Assembly: GCA_044892525.1 (NCBI GenBank) | Contig: CM097885.1 | Location: 176,514,001-176,577,768 of the forward strand | Source of the DNA: Schmidtea polychroa | Taxonomy: Eukaryota | Length of the DNA stretch: 63,768 nt | Reading direction: 5' to 3' | The notes under the pieces: model-generated | The model's database searches: none | What the model was told of the DNA's origin: nothing | What the model saw: the letters and a program-made list of their open reading frames with translations, nothing else | In this document: positions 49,048 through 63,467 of the stretch, piece after piece | Position numbering within the stretch: position 1 is the stretch's first letter | How the letters are laid out: each line of letters starts with the position of its first letter | Made by a program: the position numbers and the translations under genes

Positions 49048-52000
49048 GTCTTATTGTCTTATCCATAGCTCTCATAGTGTCTGCGGCTTTACTCGAATTA
49101 AATCTCACGTCTTCGATTCTTTCGCTTCTTGATATCTCGGCTTGTTTCAGATTAGAGTGTAGGTTAACACTCCGTCCATAAATTATCTCAAATGGTGATA
49201 AACCTGTAGCACTTTGTCGACTGCTATTTATAGTGAACTCTATTCTGGGTAGAAGTTCGTGCCAGTTTCTCTCTTCATATCCGCCTGCCAATGTTGCTGT
49301 AATAAGATCTCTTATCGTTCGTATGGATCTTTCGGCTAAACCATTTGATTGGTGCTGGTAAGGTGAGCTGAATTCCTGTTTGATTCCAAGTTTCTGTAGT
49401 TTCTGTCTTAGGAAATTCCCTTCGAAATTTCGGCCTCTATCTGTTAAAATGCTCTTCGGTTTTCAAAATCGTTAGATAAGTATTGTTTTGAAAATGGTCC
49501 CTTCGTCTTGCTTTGTGATTGCAGTTAAAGAAATCAGTTTGCTAAAACGGTCCACCATTACTACCATATATTTTTTCATGGCGTTTATTTCCATGTAAGC
49601 CACCTCTATAACAATCTGTTCTAGGAATTCAGAGCTATATCTAGAAATAAATGTTTCCTTGGTTCTTGTCTGATCGATCTTGCAACATCGTAAACAGAGT
49701 TGGATTGTTTCTTGCATTTTCGGCCAATAAAATATCTTTTCCATATAATGAAATAATTTCTTAACTCCAATGTGACATAGTTCTTCATGTAGGGTTGTTG
49801 TTAACAGACCTGCAAATGTTTCTGGACTAACATTAAGATATTTCTGTTCTTTTCTACTGTTATTAATCCTCCATCAATTCGAGTATTTTTTACGTTAAAA
49901 GGAAAACAATTCTTTTTCTCCCGTGTACATCCATTTCCAATATCTCTGCAGCTCTCGAAACTGAATGTCCTTTTGTTGTTGTTCCCATACTTTTTCCATA
50001 GCTTCTGTTCTTTGGATAATATATATATATATATATATATAATCTTTGATTTTCCTTCCTTAGCTTCTTCATGTCTTGTTTGACACTGGGTGCAAACCAT
50101 ACTTTTTAATCTTGATAGTCCATCTGCATTTGAGTGTTCTTCGCCTTTCCGATATTTTAGTTCAAAATCATATTCCGACAGGTTAGCTAACCATGTTTGG
50201 AACTGCGGACTGATTGGTGTTTTTGTAGTGTTCATAAAAACCAATGCCTTGTGGTCGGTGCGAATTATGAATTTTTCCCGTACAGATATTCTTTAAAATG
50301 CATGATGTATTCATGTACGGCGAGCAGTTCTTTCCTGGTTACATAGTATCCCTTTTCATGTGATGACATATATCTCGAGCCATAAGCTATGACAGATTCT
50401 TCTCCATCTTCTGTAATTTGACTCAAAACTGCACCAATGGCTCCGAAACTAGCGTCTGTGTCTAAGATAAAAGTCCTATCTTTTGGAAAATCAAGGATAG
50501 GTGCTTCGCACAACCGTCTCTTCAGAGTTTGGAAGCTCTCATTGCATTCTTTAGTCCAATATATATCTTTATCGCATCCAGATGTTGCAGTTTATAATGG
50601 TTCGGCGATTTTGGCATAGTCTTTGATGAATCTTTTATAGTAGTTCGTTAATCCGAGATATGATCTCAATTGTTTTGAACATTTTGGTACTTCTGCTTTC
50701 TCGATCTCTTCCACTTTCTTCCTGTTTGTCTGGATACCCTTCTCGTTAATTGTGTGACCAAGGAAACACAATTCTTTTTTATTGAATTTGTATTTTTCTG
50801 GATTTATCTTCAGTCCTGCCACTTGAATTCTTCTGAATATTTCCCTTAATAGCTCATCGTGGTCTTTTTGACTTTTACCATATACCAAGATATCATCTAG
50901 ATAAACTACTACTCCCTTAAATAGCATTCCTTCTAGCACTGTGTGCATCACTCTCTGGAATGTCGCAGGAGCTGTTGCTAAGCGAAACGGTAGTCTATTG
51001 AAGCAAAATTGTCCTTCTCTTGTACTGAATGCAGTCATTTCTTGAATTTCTGGAGCCAACTCCACTTGATAATACGCCTGACCTAAATCGATTGACGAAA
51101 ATATTTTTGCATTCGCGAGACAGTCTAGTAAGAATTTGGTGTTAGGCATAGGAAATGACTCTTTTTCTGTTATGGAATTTAATCCACGATAATCTACACA
51201 CATCCTGATAGATCCATCTTTCTTCCCTACTATCACTAACGGGGCATTCCAAGGACTCTTGCAACACCGAATAACATTTGGTTTCATTAACTTTTTTATC
51301 AGTTCTTCAATCCTTTTCACCATGTGCATTGGTTGACGTCGAGGATGTTGTATTTTTTGGCCTCCTGTTATCCGCATCTCATGTCGAACTAAGTTTGTAA
51401 ATCCCAGATCGAATTTCGATGCCATAAAAATTCCGCCATATTCCCTGATCATTCCTTCAATATCTTTACTATTCTCACCTGCCATCTCCACTAGTGGCTT
51501 ATTTATTCTTTCTTCATCAGTGTAAATTTTGTTTATCAATGACTTTTCTATATTATTGATTTTCACTAACTTTACTCCAAAGTCTTTCATTGTATCAATG
51601 CCCCTATGAATTCGGGTTTGATCTCTTTTACCACTACTACTGTGATTATTTTGGTCTTCTGATTCCATGTGGCAGGTATAGTCATGTATCCCATTGCTTC
51701 TTCACCTCCAGTTGAAAAAACTCCGCACAATAATATCATACTACGTTTAAGTTCTGGTTTGCCTATTTTCTCCCACAAATTCTTGCTCATGACTGTTACT
51801 GATGCCCCAGAATCCCATAACATCTCTGTTTCGGCATTATTCAACATTATTTTACTCCAATTTCTTCCATCTTTCGTCTGGTACATCTCTTCTTCTGCCT
51901 CGTCTCTTCTTCGTTCATTTCTTATTTCACAATTTATTGTCTTGACTCCACCGACGAAATGAAACCCATGGAGTCGCTGATGTTTTTCCGTCTTCTCTCA

Positions 52001-53227
52001 ATATAGTATATTTCTCAGGGACACTGTATCTATCTTCCATATTGCATGATCCATTCTGAAATCCTGGCTGTTCTCGGTGTAATCTCTTGTTTCAGATTTT
52101 GAATCTTCTTCTTCTATGCACGCTATCCTTTGATATCGATGTGGAACATCTTTCCGTAACGAAAAACAATCTCGGAACCCGTGTCCTTCCTTGCCACATA
52201 TCAGGCATTTATTTCCCAGTGGACACTCATACCTTCTATGTCCTCTTTCGCCACAGTAAAAACAATCACCTACCGTTAATTTTGGGACCGATGCTTGTGG
52301 TAGTCCCCTACTTTCGTTGTACAGCCTCCTTGCAATATTCTTCATGAATATTGTTGGCAGCTTCCTTTCTGAGCCGTTCGGGATTCTCGTATTTCTCAAG
52401 AATTGCTCTCTTGGAGATTTCTCTCGACGACCATGGTTATTTCCTTCGTATTGTATTGGTCCGCGTATAGGATGTTCGTCTCTTCTTGATCTGTGGTGAC
52501 TAAAGGGGTCTTCTGATAGTCTTCTTTGTGATGATGTAGGCATGGGATTTTGGGTATTCTTTTGAATTCTCATCTTCCCTCCCTCAGTCACGCTAGCGTA
52601 TGTTCTTTGACCGATTGCTTTAATAAATTCTGTTTTATGGTTTCCGTTTTTGTTACTTTCAAAAATTTTCGCCAATGACCTCGTTTCTTCAATTTGTGTT
52701 TCTTGTTTCGTCAATAGTATCTCCCTCAGTCTCGCATTGCGTGCTTTATTTGCGATGAGGTCTTGAACAATATCTTCTTCTGATCGTCCTGAATTTACAA
52801 CTTCAGCTAAAGCTTTTCTTAGTCGTATCTCAAAAGCTGCAAACCTTTCATCATCTTCCTGTTCCATAGCTGCCAATTCTCTGATTTTGTCAGTTATTGA
52901 TTTTGTAATTGTGAATGTATTTAAGAACCACGCTTTGGCTTTTACATCTGTTGTTTCTGTTTCTCTGACGTTTCCTCACAATGTCTTTGTTTCTGCCACT
53001 AATAACACATCGAAAGTGCTTGTCAATCGCTGTCCATTTGTCAGCAACCATTCTTCTATATCCCTGATCCATTCTTCGGCTTCTTTTAAACCTCGTCCAT
53101 CATATCGTCTAATGTTCAGTGTGAGCATGTCTTGGCATGATTTCGGTAGGCATTCCATTAGCAATTTTGTCGATTTCGAAATGGCGTTGATATTTTGATT
53201 TTCGGCGTGGTCGACAGTTAAATCCAT
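49048..53227 (-). mobile_element. Ty3/Gypsy internal region (gag-PR-RT-RH-IN) lacking LTRs, disrupted
   Basis: Gag with two CCHC knuckles (CFYCGERGHRRYEC, CLICGKEGHGFRDC), LWDSGAS protease, YLDD RT, TDASFGAIGAVL RNase H, HHCC + DDE integrase placed after RNase H. Confidence 0.96.
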
Positions 53228-54793
53228 CTTTAAATTTGCAGCAAAAATCTTGAAACTAACAATATATATTTAATCAAAGAATTTATAAATAACAAGATTT
53301 AATTAATTCACAAAAACCGCCAATTCCAAATTATTTAAACAAAAAGATATCTAACTGCAATATTATTAATACTCATAATTATAGTGTTAAATTCATCTCT
53401 GCTCCATTAACAATAAAGAAATTTTTATTTTCTCTCTCTACCAAACTGGCAGAAACAGTTGGTATTAAGAATGATGTGCATAGGGTGTTGCAATTAATAA
53501 AGCATTAGACTTTCTTAAACAGCAGAAACAATTACCAGATTTTCTTGTAAAATCAGAGATAAGATATGTCAATGGAGAGTTTATGATGAGGAATCTTTCA
53601 AATTCTGATAGTCATGATAGTTCTGAAAATGAAATTGTAAGTACTGATTCAATAAACTTAACTAGATCTCAAATTAACAAACTTTATATTGACTTTCCTG
53701 AAATTAAAGAAATGTGTTTTATAGAAAACATTTCAAAAAATCCCAATAATTTGATTGATTTAATGAATTATTTAAAATTAAATAAGAAATTTCCAAAAGA
53801 AATTTATTTTTGATAATAAATCTGAGAAAAAAGAACCTGTTTCAAAAAATGCTTCAGATATTATGTTTAACCTGGGATTATTTATTCTTTTTGAAATGAA
53901 TCAAGATGATAAGGAAATAGATAGGCTCTTATCACTTCCAGTTTCACCAAATAAGACAGTTGAAATAATCTTTTATCTAAACTATTTAAACTTGAAAGGT
54001 GCTCTAAAGTATTCAACGAATATTACTTACAAAAATTATGTTTTCAACTATTTCCGCAATGTTTTACTTCTTCATTCAATCATTGAGCAGAAAAATTGCA
54101 ATTCTTTGAAAATCGATGATCTTGAAATTTGGGGTTCTGAATTAGTTGATAAAATTCCTACAACTTCATATTTCAAAATTAGTTGTCAGGAAGAACTGAT
54201 AAAGTTTAAACAATGGATGCTGACAGGCGAAATTGATAAATTAAAAAACATAATTTCTCAGGATACAATTAGTAGAATAAATAAATTTGTACAATTAATT
54301 AGTAAATCATATCCAATCAAAGAAAATCAATTGAGTATGATAGACTCATTCTTAACTCACATCAACGATTTCCGTTCTGAAGGAGCCGACACTTGCACAA
54401 TTAAAGCTAAGCGATTATTATATTTTATCATTAGAGATAAGAAGCGATTCCTTCTTAACAATAAAGATGATTTCCAAGTTCCTATGACATGTCGACAAAT
54501 CTGTACAATAGAAATGAACTCTGTTATTGTTGATCTTCTTAAATCTCTTGAAAATCTGATGAGTTTTAAAGAAACTATTAACCCTACAGATTCCACTGAC
54601 AATTCTAATACCTTCTGTAAAGATGTGGATACTTGCTACACTGTTGAGAACTTTGAAAATGGAATTTTTGAGAAAAGATTTATTTAAATGTTGATATTAA
54701 TGAGGAATCATTGGCTTCTTTAACATTAAAAGGTGCAGATATTAAAAAAATGACAACGAGAAAAGATATGAAATCGTTGAAGGCAAACTCCAA

Positions 54794-55440
54794 GTGAAGT
54801 TATCAGCATCAACAACTACTACATTGCCAGGTGGGACTGATGCAGAATGCACCTTTGATAATTTTGATTTTGAATGTTGGTTTACTGATGACGACATTGA
54901 TTATTATTTTGAAAGTCACATTAGTAATCCAAGGTTTACATTCATTAAATGTTTTGTTACGAGTATTTTATGCTCAAATATTTCAGAAGAAATTGTTCCA
55001 ATTTCCAATAACATTTTTGAAGCTCGAGTTATCTTATGCCCTCTCAACATTAACAACTGCCACTGGATTTTATTTGTTTATTGTAAAGTTTCCTGTAACT
55101 CATACTTCATCGATCCTATCTTTACAAACAAGAGAAGGGTAGAAAATAAAGAAAGTGCACATATAATAAAATTGGTTCTAAATAATAAATTTTCACTTTA
55201 AAATACAATAGTTGATAATCCCCATCAAAATCTTGAATATCAAAATAACAATTTTGATTGCGGACCTTACATTTGCGCTTATGCAATGATTGTGTGTAAA
55301 GAATGGAACTGTTTTCCTGCAAATTTTATTCTTAATATTAGGAAAGAGATTTGCTTGTTTCAGAAATTTAAATCGATCCATAATACTAATATATCGGAGG
55401 TGGAATTTCGAAAGATCACTTCCTTAATAAAATCAACTTT
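54794..55440 (+). pseudogene. Ulp1/SENP (peptidase C48) domain of the retrotransposon
   Basis: WFTDDDID, PLNINNCHWIL (His), YFIDP (Asp), then in the same frame past one TAA: YQNNNFDCGPYIC (Gln, Cys). Confidence 0.88.
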
Positions 55441-55452
55441 AAAAAAGCAATT

Positions 55453-56473
55453 GTGTTAAAAAATAAACAACAAAATAAAATATTAGAACCTTTAAAGCTT
55501 ATTCATGACAAAGCTTGCGTCTCGACTCTTTTAAAGAAGTGGTTTGAAAATAACCAAAAGATATTGGTTCTTTCTCCAGATCTAACAGTCAACTTGGTAG
55601 CTCAAAACAATGCTTATATTATCGAGCATGTTATGTTTAGACAATTTAAATGATAACTATTGGTGTCTTTTTCTCTGTTCCACTTTTCTTGGCTTCAGCT
55701 ACATCTTTGATGTTCGATCTTCTCAAAATATCAATAAAAGACTTTTAGGAATAGGAGAAAATATGACTGATTACTTAAATAAATTTATTCTAGATAAAGC
55801 AATTAAATTTAAGAAAACACATAGTCTTTTTAGGTCTACTATTTTCTCTGATGAACCAATATCTCATACCACAACTATCATACTCTTTTTAGAGGAATTT
55901 ACTTCTGGGAATGTTGTAAATAGAGATGAAGTAATTGATGCATTTAGAACTATGCAATCCAAATTTCGAAATCAAGTTTCCGAAAATTTGAATTTATTAA
56001 ATTGTAAAATATCTGAAACTATTGTAACAAATTTTTTCAAAAATTTAAATTTATCTACAAATTTCATCTTTTTAAATAATACAATGTGCACAGCAATACT
56101 GGATGATTGCACTGACTATTTGAAAGAATTTTTAAATATTGATCATTTAATGAAAGCACAAATTGTATTTACTATAATAGCCCCTCCAAAAGCTCAACAA
56201 ATTTTGTTTGTCATCGACAGCAGCACGGATGAACATTATTTACTTAATCCTTCATCTTTATTGACTAATATTCCATACCTTTGTACTGCAGAAAATGTTT
56301 TGACTAAAATCAATGAAATAAGAGAAACTCCTGGTCTTTGTAAAAAATCTGGTAACTGCCCACATGATGTTCGTGGCTCTGGTCTTGTTAGCAAGATTCT
56401 CATTTGTGCGTTTATAAAAAACTACGCTTTAGATCTGTCTTTGGAAAACGTTAATCTACATGAAATGTCATAA
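55453..56473 (+). pseudogene. Two degenerate Ulp1-like repeats
   Basis: NDNYWCLFL..SYIFD and NFIFLNNTMCTAIL..AQIVFTII..QQILFVI..HYLLNP..ILICAF echo domain 1 but lack the catalytic His/Cys. Confidence 0.55.
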
Positions 56474-56592
56474 AGTCTTTGTTACCGATTGTGCAAGATA
56501 CGATGAAAGATCCTATAAAGAATTTAGCTGACGATAAAAAATGTATAAAACTTAAACTTGAATAACATATAAATTTAATAAAAGAGCATGCG

Positions 56593-58455
56593 TTGTCTTT
56601 ACAAGAATCGAATGTAAATGAAATAAACAACTTTATTATTACAGAAATATTTAATGGCAAGGAAATTAAGGAAACTAAGATCCGTAAACCATATTTAGAA
56701 AATAAAATTAGCAAAGACAAACAACCTAAAAGTAATCTAACTGCCTCTTTCAATCGTAATATGAAAATAACTGTAAATAAAATTTTAAATAATGATGAGA
56801 TAAATGATCGGCCAACAATTACAGATCACAATAATAATTTTAACCATCGAGATCCCATTGTTAGAAATTATGATAATGTCTTAAAATTTGGTATAAAATC
56901 TAAAACAATTCTTTTACTCCGACCGATAGTAGATAAGGAGGTTGTTTTTGAATTAAAAATAGCTGATAATACATCTCCTGGACTTGATGGAATTCAATAT
57001 AAGGATATTGCAATTCTTGATCCAGAGGGTAAATTGTTGACTCTTCTTTACAACAAAATCATAACAGAAAATACTGTGCCGGAAGTTTGGAAATCTTTTA
57101 AGACTCTGATGATTCCTAAACCTGAGAAGGGAGATAAATATACTTTGATTTATTCTTGGCGCCCTATTGCTTTGTTATCGGTGGTCTATAAGATATTTGC
57201 GTCGATTTCAGCCAGGTGCCTTACACTATGGGTAAAACAAAACAATCTACTTCATATCGGACAAAAAGGTGGTTCTGTACACGTTGGTTGTGTGGAACAC
57301 AATTCAATACTTTCTTCTTGCCTGGAACACTCAAAATATAGTAAAAATAGACCTATTGCTCTTGGGTTTCTTGACATCAAAGATGCTTTTGGTAGTGTAC
57401 CCCATGATTACTTGTGGAAGATTTTGCGACATATTGGGGTTTGTAAAAAATTCACGAACACTTTAAAATTATTATACACTGATACCAGCTCCTTCTACAC
57501 TTGTGGTCCGATAATAACTCCGCATATTTCAATAAAGCAAGGTGTCAAACAAGGATGTCCTCTTTCCATGATTTTGTTCGCATTTCAATTAACCCTGTTC
57601 TTCAAGCTGTTAGTCTTTCTAATGTTGAACCTTTCAAAATTGGCGATTCTTCAATCCAAGTTCTCTCATATGCTGATGATGTCGCTCTTATCGTTAATAA
57701 TACTCATAAAATATCATAAAAGTTGCTTTCGATACAGCCTGTGAAATTGGGTTTGAATACCGACCAGAAAAATGTGCTTATATCCAGTTGCCAAATATTG
57801 ACACTGTTAGTGAAGTGTCAATTGACAATATTAAAATAAAGAAATTATTAACAAAAGAATTTTACCAGTATCTTGGAGTACCAATAGAAAGAAGAACTTG
57901 ACCAAAGTCCTTATGAAATATTAAATAAAGTAGTTAGTGATACAAAGAAACTAACAGATTCTGATTTATTTGGATGGCAAAAATTGAAAGCATACAAAGT
58001 CTTCCTTCACTCTCGTTTAGTGTTCCCTTTTAGAACTAGAGAAATTAAGATTAATGCTCTTAATGCTCACTACACAACTTCGTTGTCACTTGAGAAAGAT
58101 GATGAATTTGCCCGAACAATCTGAAATTAGCTATTTTTATAACTTCATTGAAAAGGGTTGTGCATCTTGTACTGATCTCCTTGATGAATACCACACACAG
58201 ACGATAAGTCATTTTTTCAGACTATTTACATCAAATTGTGAATATACTAGAAGGATTAATATCGACTCATTAAAGTTTGTCACTGGACCTAGGCTTGGAA
58301 ATAACCAACCATCATTACAAGAAAGCTTCAATTGGCTTAAGGAGCCAACATCGTCAAACATCATTCAGGAAAGAAAACTCGATTTTATCGACCACGTACT
58401 GTCATTCAGTTCTTTGAAAAAATTCACAACATTACAATTAGTTTTGAAGTGTTGA
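56593..58455 (+). pseudogene. Non-LTR reverse transcriptase and thumb
   Basis: PGLDGIQY, LMIPKPEKG, WRPIALLSVVYKIF, QKGG..GCVEH, FLDIKDAFGSVPH, GVKQGCPLS, YADD, YQYLGV; frameshifted. Confidence 0.95.
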
Positions 58456-58739
58456 AAAATGAACCTACTCTTCGTCTTACAACACTTTTACGCGGTACAA
58501 TGATTTTGACTCACTTAGACCGCCGTTCCATTTCCAAAATCTTTCATTTAGTCCTCTATGATTCTTATTTTACAAAATGGAAGAACAGTAATATAGTAAT
58601 ATAGTAAGTGGATCAACGACATTTAACTTATTTCCTAACATCAATAAAGCGATATTTAAAGGAGAATTGGCGGAAAGTCCTTGGAGATTTATTCATCGAG
58701 CAAGGACAAACACTCTAGCTAATCTTTAGAAACCATACA

Positions 58740-59296
58740 GAAATCCTGAGGATAGAATTTGTAGGCGCTGTCATTGTGAGGAGGAGACTTTGATACATGT
58801 TCTACAAAAGTGTAATGTTCATAAAACTCTTGCTCTTAAACGCCACAACGACTGTCTTCAACAGATTACTCACCATTTAAAGAACCCTTCACTTATTGTA
58901 GTTGTTGATCACACTTGTTCCCTAGTACCTGACTCTAAAGAACGAGTTGATCTAATCATAACCAACAACGAGAAAAAAACAATTCTTATGGTTGATATCA
59001 AATGTCCGTTTGATTCAGTGGAGATATTTGAGAAAGCTGACAAAGGGAATATTGCTAAATATGACTCTTTGAAAAATAAAATACAGGCTATAAAACCGAA
59101 CTTTGTTGTAGAACTATATACTTGTATAATCGGCTCTATAGATTCTGTTCCACTACCTACTCATGACCTACTTTTAAAGATGGGGGTTCCACTATTAAAA
59201 ATACCTGGTCTCCTAAACGCATGTGCATTGAGCAACATAACCAATTCATCAAAAACGTGGCATTACCACGCCACTGTCGTGCTTCCAGATTATTAA
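58740..59296 (+). pseudogene. CCHC finger + restriction-like endonuclease
   Basis: CRRCHCEEETLIHVLQKC, RHN, RVDLII, VDIKCPF (PD-(D/E)xK type). Confidence 0.9.
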
Positions 59297-59325
59297 ATTT
59301 AATCGTATTAAAAATAAAATTTATT

Positions 59326-59618
59326 GATTGTTTGATGCATTATTATTTTTATTGCTTAAAGAATATATCATTTATTTTGCTGAAGGTCATTTCAAATTTA
59401 TTTTACAAAAAGAACACAGAATTAATCGTTTTTTTGTTTGAATATTCAAATATTTAAATATTAAATGTTTTTAAATAACAATTCAATGTTAAAATTGTTG
59501 CCATATGAAAATGGAAGTTCCCAAGAGGCAAATATTCCAAAGCAGAAAGTTTCATTGCCTGCTTCATTTGAAAATGGGATTTTTCTCATGTTGGAAAAAA
59601 TGGAAAAAAGTTTGACGA
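59326..59618 (+). repeat. Repeat A, second copy
   Basis: Near-identical to 47991-48285; starts directly after the 3' end of the non-LTR element. Confidence 0.9.
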
Positions 59619-59919
59619 AATTTTGCTGTCACCAAAAAAGAAACAAGAGACCAAATTATATATCAATCCGCCATTTTTTAGGAATCGTTTAGAGCTAATA
59701 GAATGAGCAAAGCCGGAGAAAGAAAGCCCGATGAAAATCAGTTGTGCCAGAGAAAATTCAAAGAGAAATTTTCTATTCAGACAATTGTTTTTCTCCAAAT
59801 TGATATTCATAACAGAAAAGTTGTCTCTATGGAAAATTATCTATTTGAATGGCGGGTTCCAAGTTGAACCGTTTATTCTAACGAAAAGAAAAACTTGTTG
59901 TATTAATAAATTTTTAAAG

Positions 59920-60240
59920 TAGTGGTAGCTGTCGCTGTCGTTGTCGTTGTGGTAGTCGTAGTCGTAGTCGTAGTCATGGTTGTGGTAGTGGTGGTTACTA
60001 GACGGAGACAGTTAGCAAGCAGTGACCACTAAGTTTGACGACACAGTAACCATGATAAGTACGTGGTCAGTTAGCAACAGGTTTGTATATGACGCAATAA
60101 GCACGCTATTGGTCATTTAGTAACATTGTGTGTATTACGTAAAGGTCACACGAATGGTCAGTTAGTAACAGTTTATACATTACATAATCGGCCATTATTA
60201 TGTAATCATAATACCACCATTTGTATCTGACGGGCTTACA
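59920..60240 (-). repeat. LTR-like repeat C2
   Basis: Homologous to C1; minus strand begins TGTAAG at 60240 after a purine-rich AGTAGAAGGT. Confidence 0.65.
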
Positions 60241-61279: not shown

Positions 61280-62010
61280 TGGTTGACAACGTGGTGAAAA
61301 CTATAGAGGGTAAGATATGGATACCTAGCGACAAAAGACAAGAAATGATAAAGAGTATGCATATTTTGCTATCACACGCAGGAGCAGATAAGGTGACAAA
61401 ATATTTAGCGGACAATTACCACATGGGAGACATAAAAGAAACAATCGGACAATGTGAGGCATGTCAAAGAACGAAAGTAGTGACAAAAAAGATGAAGGAA
61501 GAGACAATAAAGCTGACAGCAGAGGAGCCGTGGGAAAAAGTGTACATTGATATATGTGGCCCATTACAGGAAACATTCAGAAAGAAAAGATATATAGTCG
61601 CAATGATTGATCAATTTAGCAGATATATCTCTCTGACTGCTGAAACAATACTATAAAAATGGATTCTTAGATTTGGAGCACTAAAGGAAATTCACACAGA
61701 TTGTGGAAAAGTATTTGAATCTAAGACAATGAAAGATTTTACAAAATTAATGTGAATTACACTATGCTTTTCAAGTCCATATCACCATAATACAAATGGT
61801 GTGATAGAACGTAAATTCAGGACAACAAGAGACTATATAAATGTATCATTAAAAGAAAAAAAGTAGAACAGATTGGACAGAGATTATACCATAGATTGAA
61901 TTTACCATGAATGCAACATTTCAGAAATCAATTGGACAAAGTCCCGCAGAAGTAATATTTGGAAGAAAAATAGGTCGAGAAATATTTTTGTGTAAAGCGA
62001 CGATTACATG
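61280..62010 (+). pseudogene. Ty3/Gypsy integrase fragment
   Basis: H..LSHAG...CEACQRTK, PWEKVYIDICGPL, MIDQFSRY, IHTDCGKVFES, SPYHHNTNGVIER, QSPAEVIFGR. Confidence 0.92.
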
Positions 62011-63000: not shown

Positions 63001-63467
63001 ATGGATCCACGTAAGTAGAAGTGCAATTTGTTTTTAAATTTAACGCAGTCTTAGATATTCCAGCGGAAACAACAGTCGTTGTTGAGCAAACCCCTCATGG
63101 AACAAGTGATGCTACTGTAATCGTTCAAAATCAAGCACCGATTTGTGGGCCGCCGATTTATCCAGGACACGCAGGAGTTACCGTCACCACTCCAGGTATT
63201 CATTGTCCACCTATGTATATGGGACAACAGCCTACTGTCGTTGTTCAAGGCCAAGCTCCTTATATGGGATACCCAGGACAATCTACAGTTGTTATTCAAA
63301 ACACCGGTGTTCATTACGACCCCGCCATGGAGGAAGATCGAGATGATGATGGCTATATTATCGACGACGATTATTATTATTTTGACAAAGGATATTACAC
63401 AGACGAAGATTATTACAGCAAAGATCACTATTGGAAATATTTCAAAACTCATGTAAATTTAGTTTAA
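63001..63467 (+). CDS. Spliced low-complexity protein (Pro/Gly/Val/Gln repeats, Asp/Tyr-rich tail)
   Basis: ATGGATCCAC|GTAAGT donor at 63011; acceptor at 63048 or 63054, both in frame with the 63021..63467 ORF; repeated T-V-(V/I)-(V/I)-(E)Q motifs. Confidence 0.6.

Follow-up and report, generated by a model that had tools for sequence, protein, structure and literature searches.

Why does a retrotransposon carry three SUMO-protease-like blocks in a row ahead of its reverse transcriptase (RT)? The question arises from positions 54794-56473 (plus strand) of a 63,768-nucleotide stretch of Schmidtea polychroa DNA (GenBank assembly GCA_044892525.1, contig CM097885.1, positions 176,514,001 to 176,577,768 of the forward strand), referred to here as the window. 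The segment is the front, the N-terminal third, of open reading frame 2 (ORF2) in a retrotransposon without long terminal repeats (non-LTR), of the R2/NeSL group, a type that carries a restriction-like endonuclease (RLE). It encodes three tandem domains of the C48/Ulp1 fold, which are the products of internal duplication: module 1 has the residues of an active protease, and modules 2 and 3 are pseudo-proteases. This three-module layout is maintained by purifying selection in many active families. As to its function, we lean with slightly more confidence than doubt towards a tandem module that is processed at a Gly-Gly-Gly (GGG) in the linker behind module 1, leaving the two pseudo-proteases as a non-catalytic arm.

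Copy L031 of an intact sister family in the same genome served as reference. Its ORF2 of 1517 amino acids (1034-5584 of L031) holds module 1 at residues 28-199, the linker GGG at 202-204, module 2 at 238-394, module 3 at 404-580 and the RT at 787-1045. In the window copy, module 1 occupies 54794-55456 on the plus strand, or about 54875-55390 when bounded more closely. Pfam assigned Peptidase_C48 (PF02902) to 54794-55198; this first piece alone gave 24.9 bits (E 2.2e-5) and module 1 of the intact relative gave 34.1 bits (E 3e-8), at a curated cut-off of 20.7 bits. Phmmer matched module 1 to yeast Ulp1 (E 9e-5) and to SENP2 (E 0.0036) with catalytic and tunnel residues aligned, and the two residues of the Gly-Gly tunnel, Trp29 and Trp91, matched their SENP2 counterparts. 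The key codons in the window are Trp at 54878-80, His at 55061-63, Trp at 55064-66, Asp at 55112-14, Gln at 55241-43 and Cys at 55259-61. These residues are invariant in five full-length relatives, and the His-Asp-Gln-Cys set that a preliminary description had reported as intact in the first domain was present in full on the plus strand. By its residues, module 1 is a C48/Ulp1 domain predicted to be a complete Gly-Gly-specific cysteine protease.

Modules 2 (about 55513-55990) and 3 (about 56006-56470), both on the plus strand, are supported by AlphaFold2 models of the intact homologue, Foldseek and hhalign. Neither gave a Pfam match even at E 10. A BLASTP comparison of the N-terminal 700 residues with themselves returned no off-diagonal match, so that the repeat is visible only at the profile and fold level. 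We built profiles from the five full-length relatives (25-42% identical) and compared them with hhalign, using 60 column shuffles per pair as a null. Modules 2 and 3 matched each other with a score of 44.8 (E 1.3e-6, probability 91%; null 12.7, standard deviation 2.1). The scores were 23.6 for modules 1 and 2 (null 12.9, standard deviation 2.5) and 19.4 for modules 1 and 3 (null 12.8, standard deviation 2.3), and none of the 60 shuffles reached the observed score for any of the three pairs. The His and Asp positions were in register in these alignments. They also reproduced the motif pairings from which the repeat had been proposed (NNCHWILFV with NDNYWCLFL and KAQQILFVI; SYFIDP with SYIFDV and HYLLNP), all of which lie on the plus strand as described. 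Hidden Markov models (HMMs) of modules 2 and 3 matched each other down to 5e-10 and matched module 1 at about 1e-3 to 1e-4; the HMM of module 1 matched the pseudo-module of relatives P0014/P0018 at about 2-5e-6. Module 1 is the most distant of the three, modules 2 and 3 being more similar between themselves, and this suggests two successive duplications behind the three-module layout.

We modelled modules 2 and 3 with AlphaFold2 from the intact 1517-amino-acid relative and family alignments, module 1 being assigned by sequence. Both blocks modelled as C48 folds of the CE clan; the predicted local distance difference test value was 85.7 in module 2 and reached 90.2 in module 3. In Foldseek searches of the PDB, the best match of module 3 was yeast Ulp1 (1euv_A, E 5.5e-6, template modelling score 0.69) and that of module 2 was Den1 (E 1.2e-5, template modelling score 0.61); the top matches of both were CE-clan proteases only (Ulp1, SENP, NEDP1). 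An independent structural search against representatives (VIA) placed module 3 with SENP5 (Z 15.9, root-mean-square deviation 3.0, 166 residues aligned) and Ulp1 (Z 15.2), and module 2 with SENP5 (Z 13.6) and Ulp1 (Z 13.0). The top 25-29 rows all belonged to the CE clan, and matches beyond the clan had Z of about 5 or less. Language-model features of module 3 pointed to C48, ElaD and poxvirus protease clusters. The models thus support the assignment of modules 2 and 3 as CE-clan/C48-fold domains.

The replacement of catalytic residues in the two further blocks, already noted in the preliminary description, can be read codon by codon. Module 2 of the window copy has Tyr at the His site (55658-60), followed by a retained Trp (55661-63), a retained Asp (55709-11) and Glu at the Cys site (55853-55). 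In module 3, the His site holds Gln (56195-97), the Asp site Asn (56246-48), the Gln site His (56363-65) and the Cys site Ser (56378-80). Two further copies of the window family (L002 and L003) have the same residue states at the catalytic positions. Among 11 module 2 sequences the His site is occupied by Tyr, Ile, Gln, Arg, Phe, Glu, Asp or Lys and never by His. The Cys site, just ahead of a long helix, holds Asp, Ser, Asn, Gln or Glu and in no case Cys (0 of 11), while the Asp is retained in about half of the sequences. The only tunnel Trp kept in module 2 is the second one, adjoining the His site, in 7 of 11 relatives. Module 3 retains neither. Its Cys site is Ser in all 12 sequences compared, inside a conserved Gly/Ser-Ser-Gly; its Asp site is Asn in 12 of 15, its Gln site is mostly His, and its His site is His in 7 of 15 and Gln in the most prolific family of the genome. 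We considered module 3 as a Ser-His hydrolase and rejected this, as the His is absent from the most active family of the genome. Because the catalytic His/Asp/Cys/Gln set is lacking, modules 2 and 3 are classed as C48-fold pseudo-proteases, with nucleophile and general base gone. The substitutions are fixed across copies, families and species, and no intact catalytic set was found in either module. Together with the PF02902 match of module 1 and the CE-clan folds of modules 2 and 3, this bears out the earlier reading of one catalytic domain and two pseudo-proteases.

The genome that hosts these elements (781 Mb, about 31% G+C and hence AT-rich) has four very large chromosomes. The sister family is 75% identical in DNA to the window copy and is present in at least 40 near-identical copies with open frames of 1519 codons. 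Other families have intact frames of 1514, 1535, 1533 and 1538 codons, and their N-termini align across all three modules at 28-54% identity. In total, at least six three-module families occur in the genome. Every one of them has many copies, often dozens, and most of these are intact. The copies form clusters, with about 8-12 kb from one to the next, which are found on each of the four chromosomes as well as many small contigs; several tandem gene arrays in the genome thus seem to be colonised by the lineage. A word-based protein search recovered one relative. A HMMER search of 1.84 billion representatives with the module 2-3 profile recovered 16 proteins, all of the same retroelement family and none of them a cellular C48 protein, so sequence alone provides no link from modules 2 and 3 to ordinary C48 proteins. 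The relatives outside this genome come from Logan, ENA and JGI assemblies, and the three-module layout recurs in metagenomic relatives. Among the relatives, P0010 and P0018 have one active module and one dead one. Pairwise comparison of the five full-length relatives gave mean identities of 0.35 for module 1, 0.31 for module 2, 0.35 for module 3 and 0.56 for the RT. Ratios of nonsynonymous to synonymous substitution (dN/dS) between the intact family and the window copy were 0.23 for module 2, 0.28 for module 3, 0.17-0.24 for module 1, 0.17 for the RT and 0.12 for the RLE; these are rough values, with dS near 1 and inflated by the decay of the window copy. By these measures, modules 2 and 3 are as conserved as module 1 and under purifying selection.

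The intact sister family sits in a tandem array of 702-bp units (L031:5588-10000, G000:C298), each with a tRNA-Ser(CGA) gene on one strand and an intron-bearing tRNA-Leu(CAA) gene on the other. At the one 3' junction read in detail, the 3' end of the element adjoins the start of the tRNA-Leu(CAA) anticodon loop. The targets given for planarian LIN families are tRNA-Arg for LIN15_SM, tRNA-Glu for LIN25_SM and 28S for LIN9/24/26_SM, and tRNA-Leu(CAA) is not among them (Kojima and Jurka, 2015; PMC4640811).

The class of the element was read from its RT and C-terminal region. Pfam found RVT_1 in the window at 56593-57741 (E 5.6e-12) and in an intact relative at E 3.7e-29. The RT-RLE core of the intact relative matched solved R2 proteins at E 2.5e-51 vs 1e-18 for LINE-1 ORF2p. 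A CRRC...H...C (CCHC) motif near the C-terminus is conserved in all relatives, and a putative PD-(D/E)xK endonuclease motif was read by eye only, with a weak HSDR_N_2 hint from Pfam (E 0.031). In nine sequences, neither ORF1 nor ORF2 showed a C2H2, CCHC or CxxC pattern ahead of the RT, and the intact relative had no zinc-finger or Myb Pfam family there. The element is an RLE-type non-LTR retrotransposon of the R2/NeSL group; the NeSL-type context assumed earlier holds, since RVT_1 is present, a CCHC knuckle lies near the C-terminus and the nearest solved relatives are R2 proteins.

The linker behind module 1 and the junction between the two frames point to a way in which these parts may work together. 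The linker is variable and rich in insertions and deletions. Its sole invariant feature is the GGG, which all full-length relatives have and which lies 46 residues past the catalytic Cys (55396-55404, plus strand, by alignment of relatives; in a shifted frame in the window copy). The modelled part of the linker, L031 residues 230-240, was disordered in the AlphaFold2 model. CE-clan enzymes, viral polyprotein proteases included, cut after Gly-Gly, and the GGG is a candidate self-cleavage site. Upstream, in two families that share about 45% identity (L031:1025-1040; L063:1980-1995), ORF1 ends in a TGA that lies in the reading frame of ORF2. In both, the start region of ORF2 has a conserved Val-Pro six bases past the TGA and no ATG. 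One of the two stop contexts is TGA CGG, a known leaky context. The in-frame TGA and the ATG-less ORF2 suggest that ORF2 may be produced by readthrough, as an ORF1-ORF2 polyprotein.

We propose the following model. ORF1 and ORF2 would be translated as a single polyprotein through the in-frame TGA, and module 1 would cut in the disordered linker that directly follows it, past the invariant Gly-Gly(-Gly); module 1 may additionally act on SUMO-type conjugates. Modules 2 and 3 would remain on the RT-RLE protein as an N-terminal, non-catalytic binding arm, taking the place held by zinc fingers and Myb in R2-type proteins. We prefer this readthrough-polyprotein model because the GGG is invariant, both tunnel Trp of module 1 are kept, the TGA is in frame and no zinc finger or Myb precedes the RT. 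The arm could bind a SUMO-type modifier, a protein that marks the target arrays, or else module 1.

Several points weigh against this model or soften it. Cleavage, readthrough and any ligand of modules 2 and 3 are what we infer rather than observe, and the GGG could simply be a flexible hinge. The sequence signal that joins module 1 to the other two modules is weak (hhalign probabilities of 6% with module 2 and 1% with module 3), and the alignments behind the fold models were shallow, with 13-15 sequences. In about half of the module 3 sequences a His remains at the catalytic position beside the Ser and Asn, through which some families could just conceivably retain a residual hydrolase activity. 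As for what the arm might bind, module 3 is acidic (isoelectric point 4.8-6.5), so direct DNA binding by it is unlikely, and we rejected it as a candidate for this reason. Module 3 also lacks the tunnel Trp, which weakens the idea of a simple clamp on the tail of a modifier.

That last point bears on the function suggested in the preliminary description, the binding of SUMO or ubiquitin-like modifiers. Here, modules 2 and 3 would be putative traps for such modifiers, much like Cys-to-Ser mutants of SENP proteases; they would attach to host proteins that bear a modifier and, together with module 1, would blunt SUMO-dependent silencing. The nearest folds are SUMO and NEDD8 proteases that have been solved with their modifiers. 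Ser stands at the module 3 Cys site throughout, the motifs of the active-site strand and helix are well conserved, and both modules are under purifying selection. However, module 3 is without both of the Trp that line the tunnel, and module 2 keeps one in 7 of 11 relatives. We hold a SUMO trap to be possible though doubtful. Polyprotein processing at the GGG, or an N-terminal binding arm, fits at least as well.

In a second alternative, modules 2 and 3 would form a putative target-selection arm that docks the ribonucleoprotein on a (possibly modified) protein marking arrays transcribed by RNA polymerase III (Pol III) or Pol I, in place of zinc fingers and Myb. Such motifs are absent from ORF1 and ORF2, where the C-terminal CCHC is the only finger-like element, and the sister family occupies a tRNA array, where it adjoins the tRNA-Leu(CAA) anticodon loop. 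Other families of the lineage target other tRNA genes and 28S (PMC4640811), and modules 2 and 3 diverge to 25-50% identity between families. On the other hand, specificity could just as well reside in ORF1, in the linker ahead of the RT or in the RLE region, and the acidity of module 3 speaks against such an arm as well. In its fullest form, this idea makes the pseudo-proteases a protein-guided homing device that has kept the surface by which a SUMO-type protease recognises its substrate and has lost catalysis. The active module would free the device from the polyprotein, and the device would recognise a chromatin protein, either modified or associated with Pol III, on tandem tRNA, small nuclear RNA and rRNA gene arrays, replacing zinc fingers. 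We regard both the arm and the homing device as unlikely.

A third alternative, suggested by analogy, is that modules 2 and 3 regulate or scaffold module 1, by positioning its substrate or by keeping it inactive until assembly. In many pairs of pseudo-enzyme and enzyme paralogues, the pseudo-enzyme regulates or scaffolds the enzyme. The modules derive from tandem duplication of an enzyme, and some relatives (P0010, P0018) combine a single active module with a single dead one. However, about 40 residues of disordered, indel-rich linker lie between modules 1 and 2, and a regulatory role of this kind seems to us quite improbable. That blocks 2 and 3 are chance look-alikes or decaying, useless relics might be argued from the blank Pfam and BLASTP self-comparisons, but it is hardly credible and already contradicted by the confident CE-clan folds, the profile matches above every shuffle, the dN/dS values of 0.23-0.28 and the intact state of the modules in at least six families plus distant relatives.

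The copy that raised the question is itself no longer functional. The sister family's intact ORF1 and ORF2, used as tblastn queries against the window, gave nine pieces in three frames that span 53359-59293; they cover the whole element, and the window copy is therefore full-length but dead. With the 3' untranslated region (UTR), the element extends over about 53359-59915 on the plus strand (ends approximate): the UTR alignment reaches 59937, and the element end lies near 59915. It comprises ORF1, ORF2 (three C48 modules, RT, CCHC and RLE) and the 3' UTR. The ORF1-like region (53359-54687, three frames, plus strand, from tblastn and reading frames) has no Pfam family. An in-frame TAA interrupts module 1 at 55199-55201, where sister copies L002 and L003 have Lys, and further TAA codons are found at 55457-59 and 56471-73. 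Frame changes fall between 55267 and 55393 and between 55545 and 55649, with more in the RT; modules 2 and 3 share one open frame at 55601-56470. The linker, RT and thumb region (56467-58595, plus strand, from RVT_1 and tblastn pieces) contains several frame changes. The C-terminal region with the CCHC knuckle and RLE (58604-59293, plus strand) was identified by its motif and by 72% identity to the intact homologue. There is no N in the window between 53400 and 56700.

The 3' flank of the window copy (59916-60010) is an imperfect GTN-rich short repeat without a tRNA gene, and so this old copy is either an off-target insertion or lies in a decayed target site. On the 5' side it is adjoined by a Gypsy-type LTR retrotransposon on the minus strand (49801-53227) with a gag containing CCHC, an aspartyl protease, RT and RNase H; this neighbour may have cut short or shifted the non-LTR copy at its 5' end. 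Further downstream on the plus strand are an isolated integrase zinc-binding (H2C2) fragment at 61291-61653, probably another LTR-element remnant, and an open frame of 148 codons at 63021-63467, rich in Pro, Gly, Val, Thr and Tyr, internally repetitive and without a Pfam family.

Ulp1-like domains have been known in NeSL-type elements since 2000 and, to our knowledge, their role is still not established. In the present lineage the protease has been duplicated twice and the dead copies have been retained for a long time, given identities of no more than 25-42% among the five full-length relatives. Activity of the elements is high, with dozens of identical intact copies per family in the genome, and the lineage offers natural contrasts, since one active module occurs with zero, one or two dead ones. 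The invariant GGG is a clear candidate cleavage site to probe. These elements appear to be precise in their choice of site and yet have no recognisable DNA-binding motif. Ligands of the dead domains could explain both the presence of SUMO-type proteases in retroelements and target finding in this group, and the latter is of interest to those adapting R2-type elements for site-specific insertion.

Compared with the Ulp1/SENP/NEDP1 proteases (MEROPS C48, clan CE), module 1 has the same sequence signature and agrees in its catalytic residues and in the two tunnel Trp. Modules 2 and 3 are alike in fold (Z 13-16) but have no Cys nucleophile, have no His in module 2 and fail Pfam. The CE-clan polyprotein proteases of viruses (adenain, African swine fever virus pS273R, poxvirus I7L) belong to the same clan and are among the fold matches, but with lower fold scores (Z 6-10) than the SUMO proteases and without tandem dead copies. 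They cut polyproteins at Gly-Gly-X, and we take this as the pattern for the proposed cut at the invariant GGG. R2 proteins of solved structure (9nl2, 9dou, 8gh6) have a homologous RT-linker-RLE core (E 2.5e-51 to 1.4e-24). R2 has N-terminal zinc-finger and Myb motifs for DNA recognition and no protease domain. The lack of an N-terminal zinc finger or Myb sets the present element apart from R2, NeSL and Utopia, but this is a difference and not a bar to membership of the group.

The closest likeness is to NeSL elements of nematodes, such as NeSL-1 of Caenorhabditis elegans, and to Utopia-1_TSP of Trichinella, for which a single Ulp1-like domain has been described (PMC4640811). These are RLE-type elements with an Ulp1-like cysteine protease upstream of the RT, as here, and their insertion sites are repeated small-RNA genes. 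They carry one protease domain each, whereas the present family has one active and two dead. Utopia has N-terminal zinc fingers; the family described here is without them and has, in addition, a separate ORF1 joined by the in-frame TGA. The planarian LIN families and R5 of Girardia, matched by description only, are probably of the same flatworm lineage, being NeSL-related and specific for tRNA or rRNA arrays; the protease content of the LIN families is not mentioned in PMC4640811. A search of the literature, with Repbase annotations outside its scope, found no report of a tandem or pseudo-protease Ulp1 arrangement in a retroelement, in agreement with the earlier statement that no described element of this kind was known to its author. 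The three-domain layout is apparently new, set upon a known type of Ulp1-bearing retroelement.

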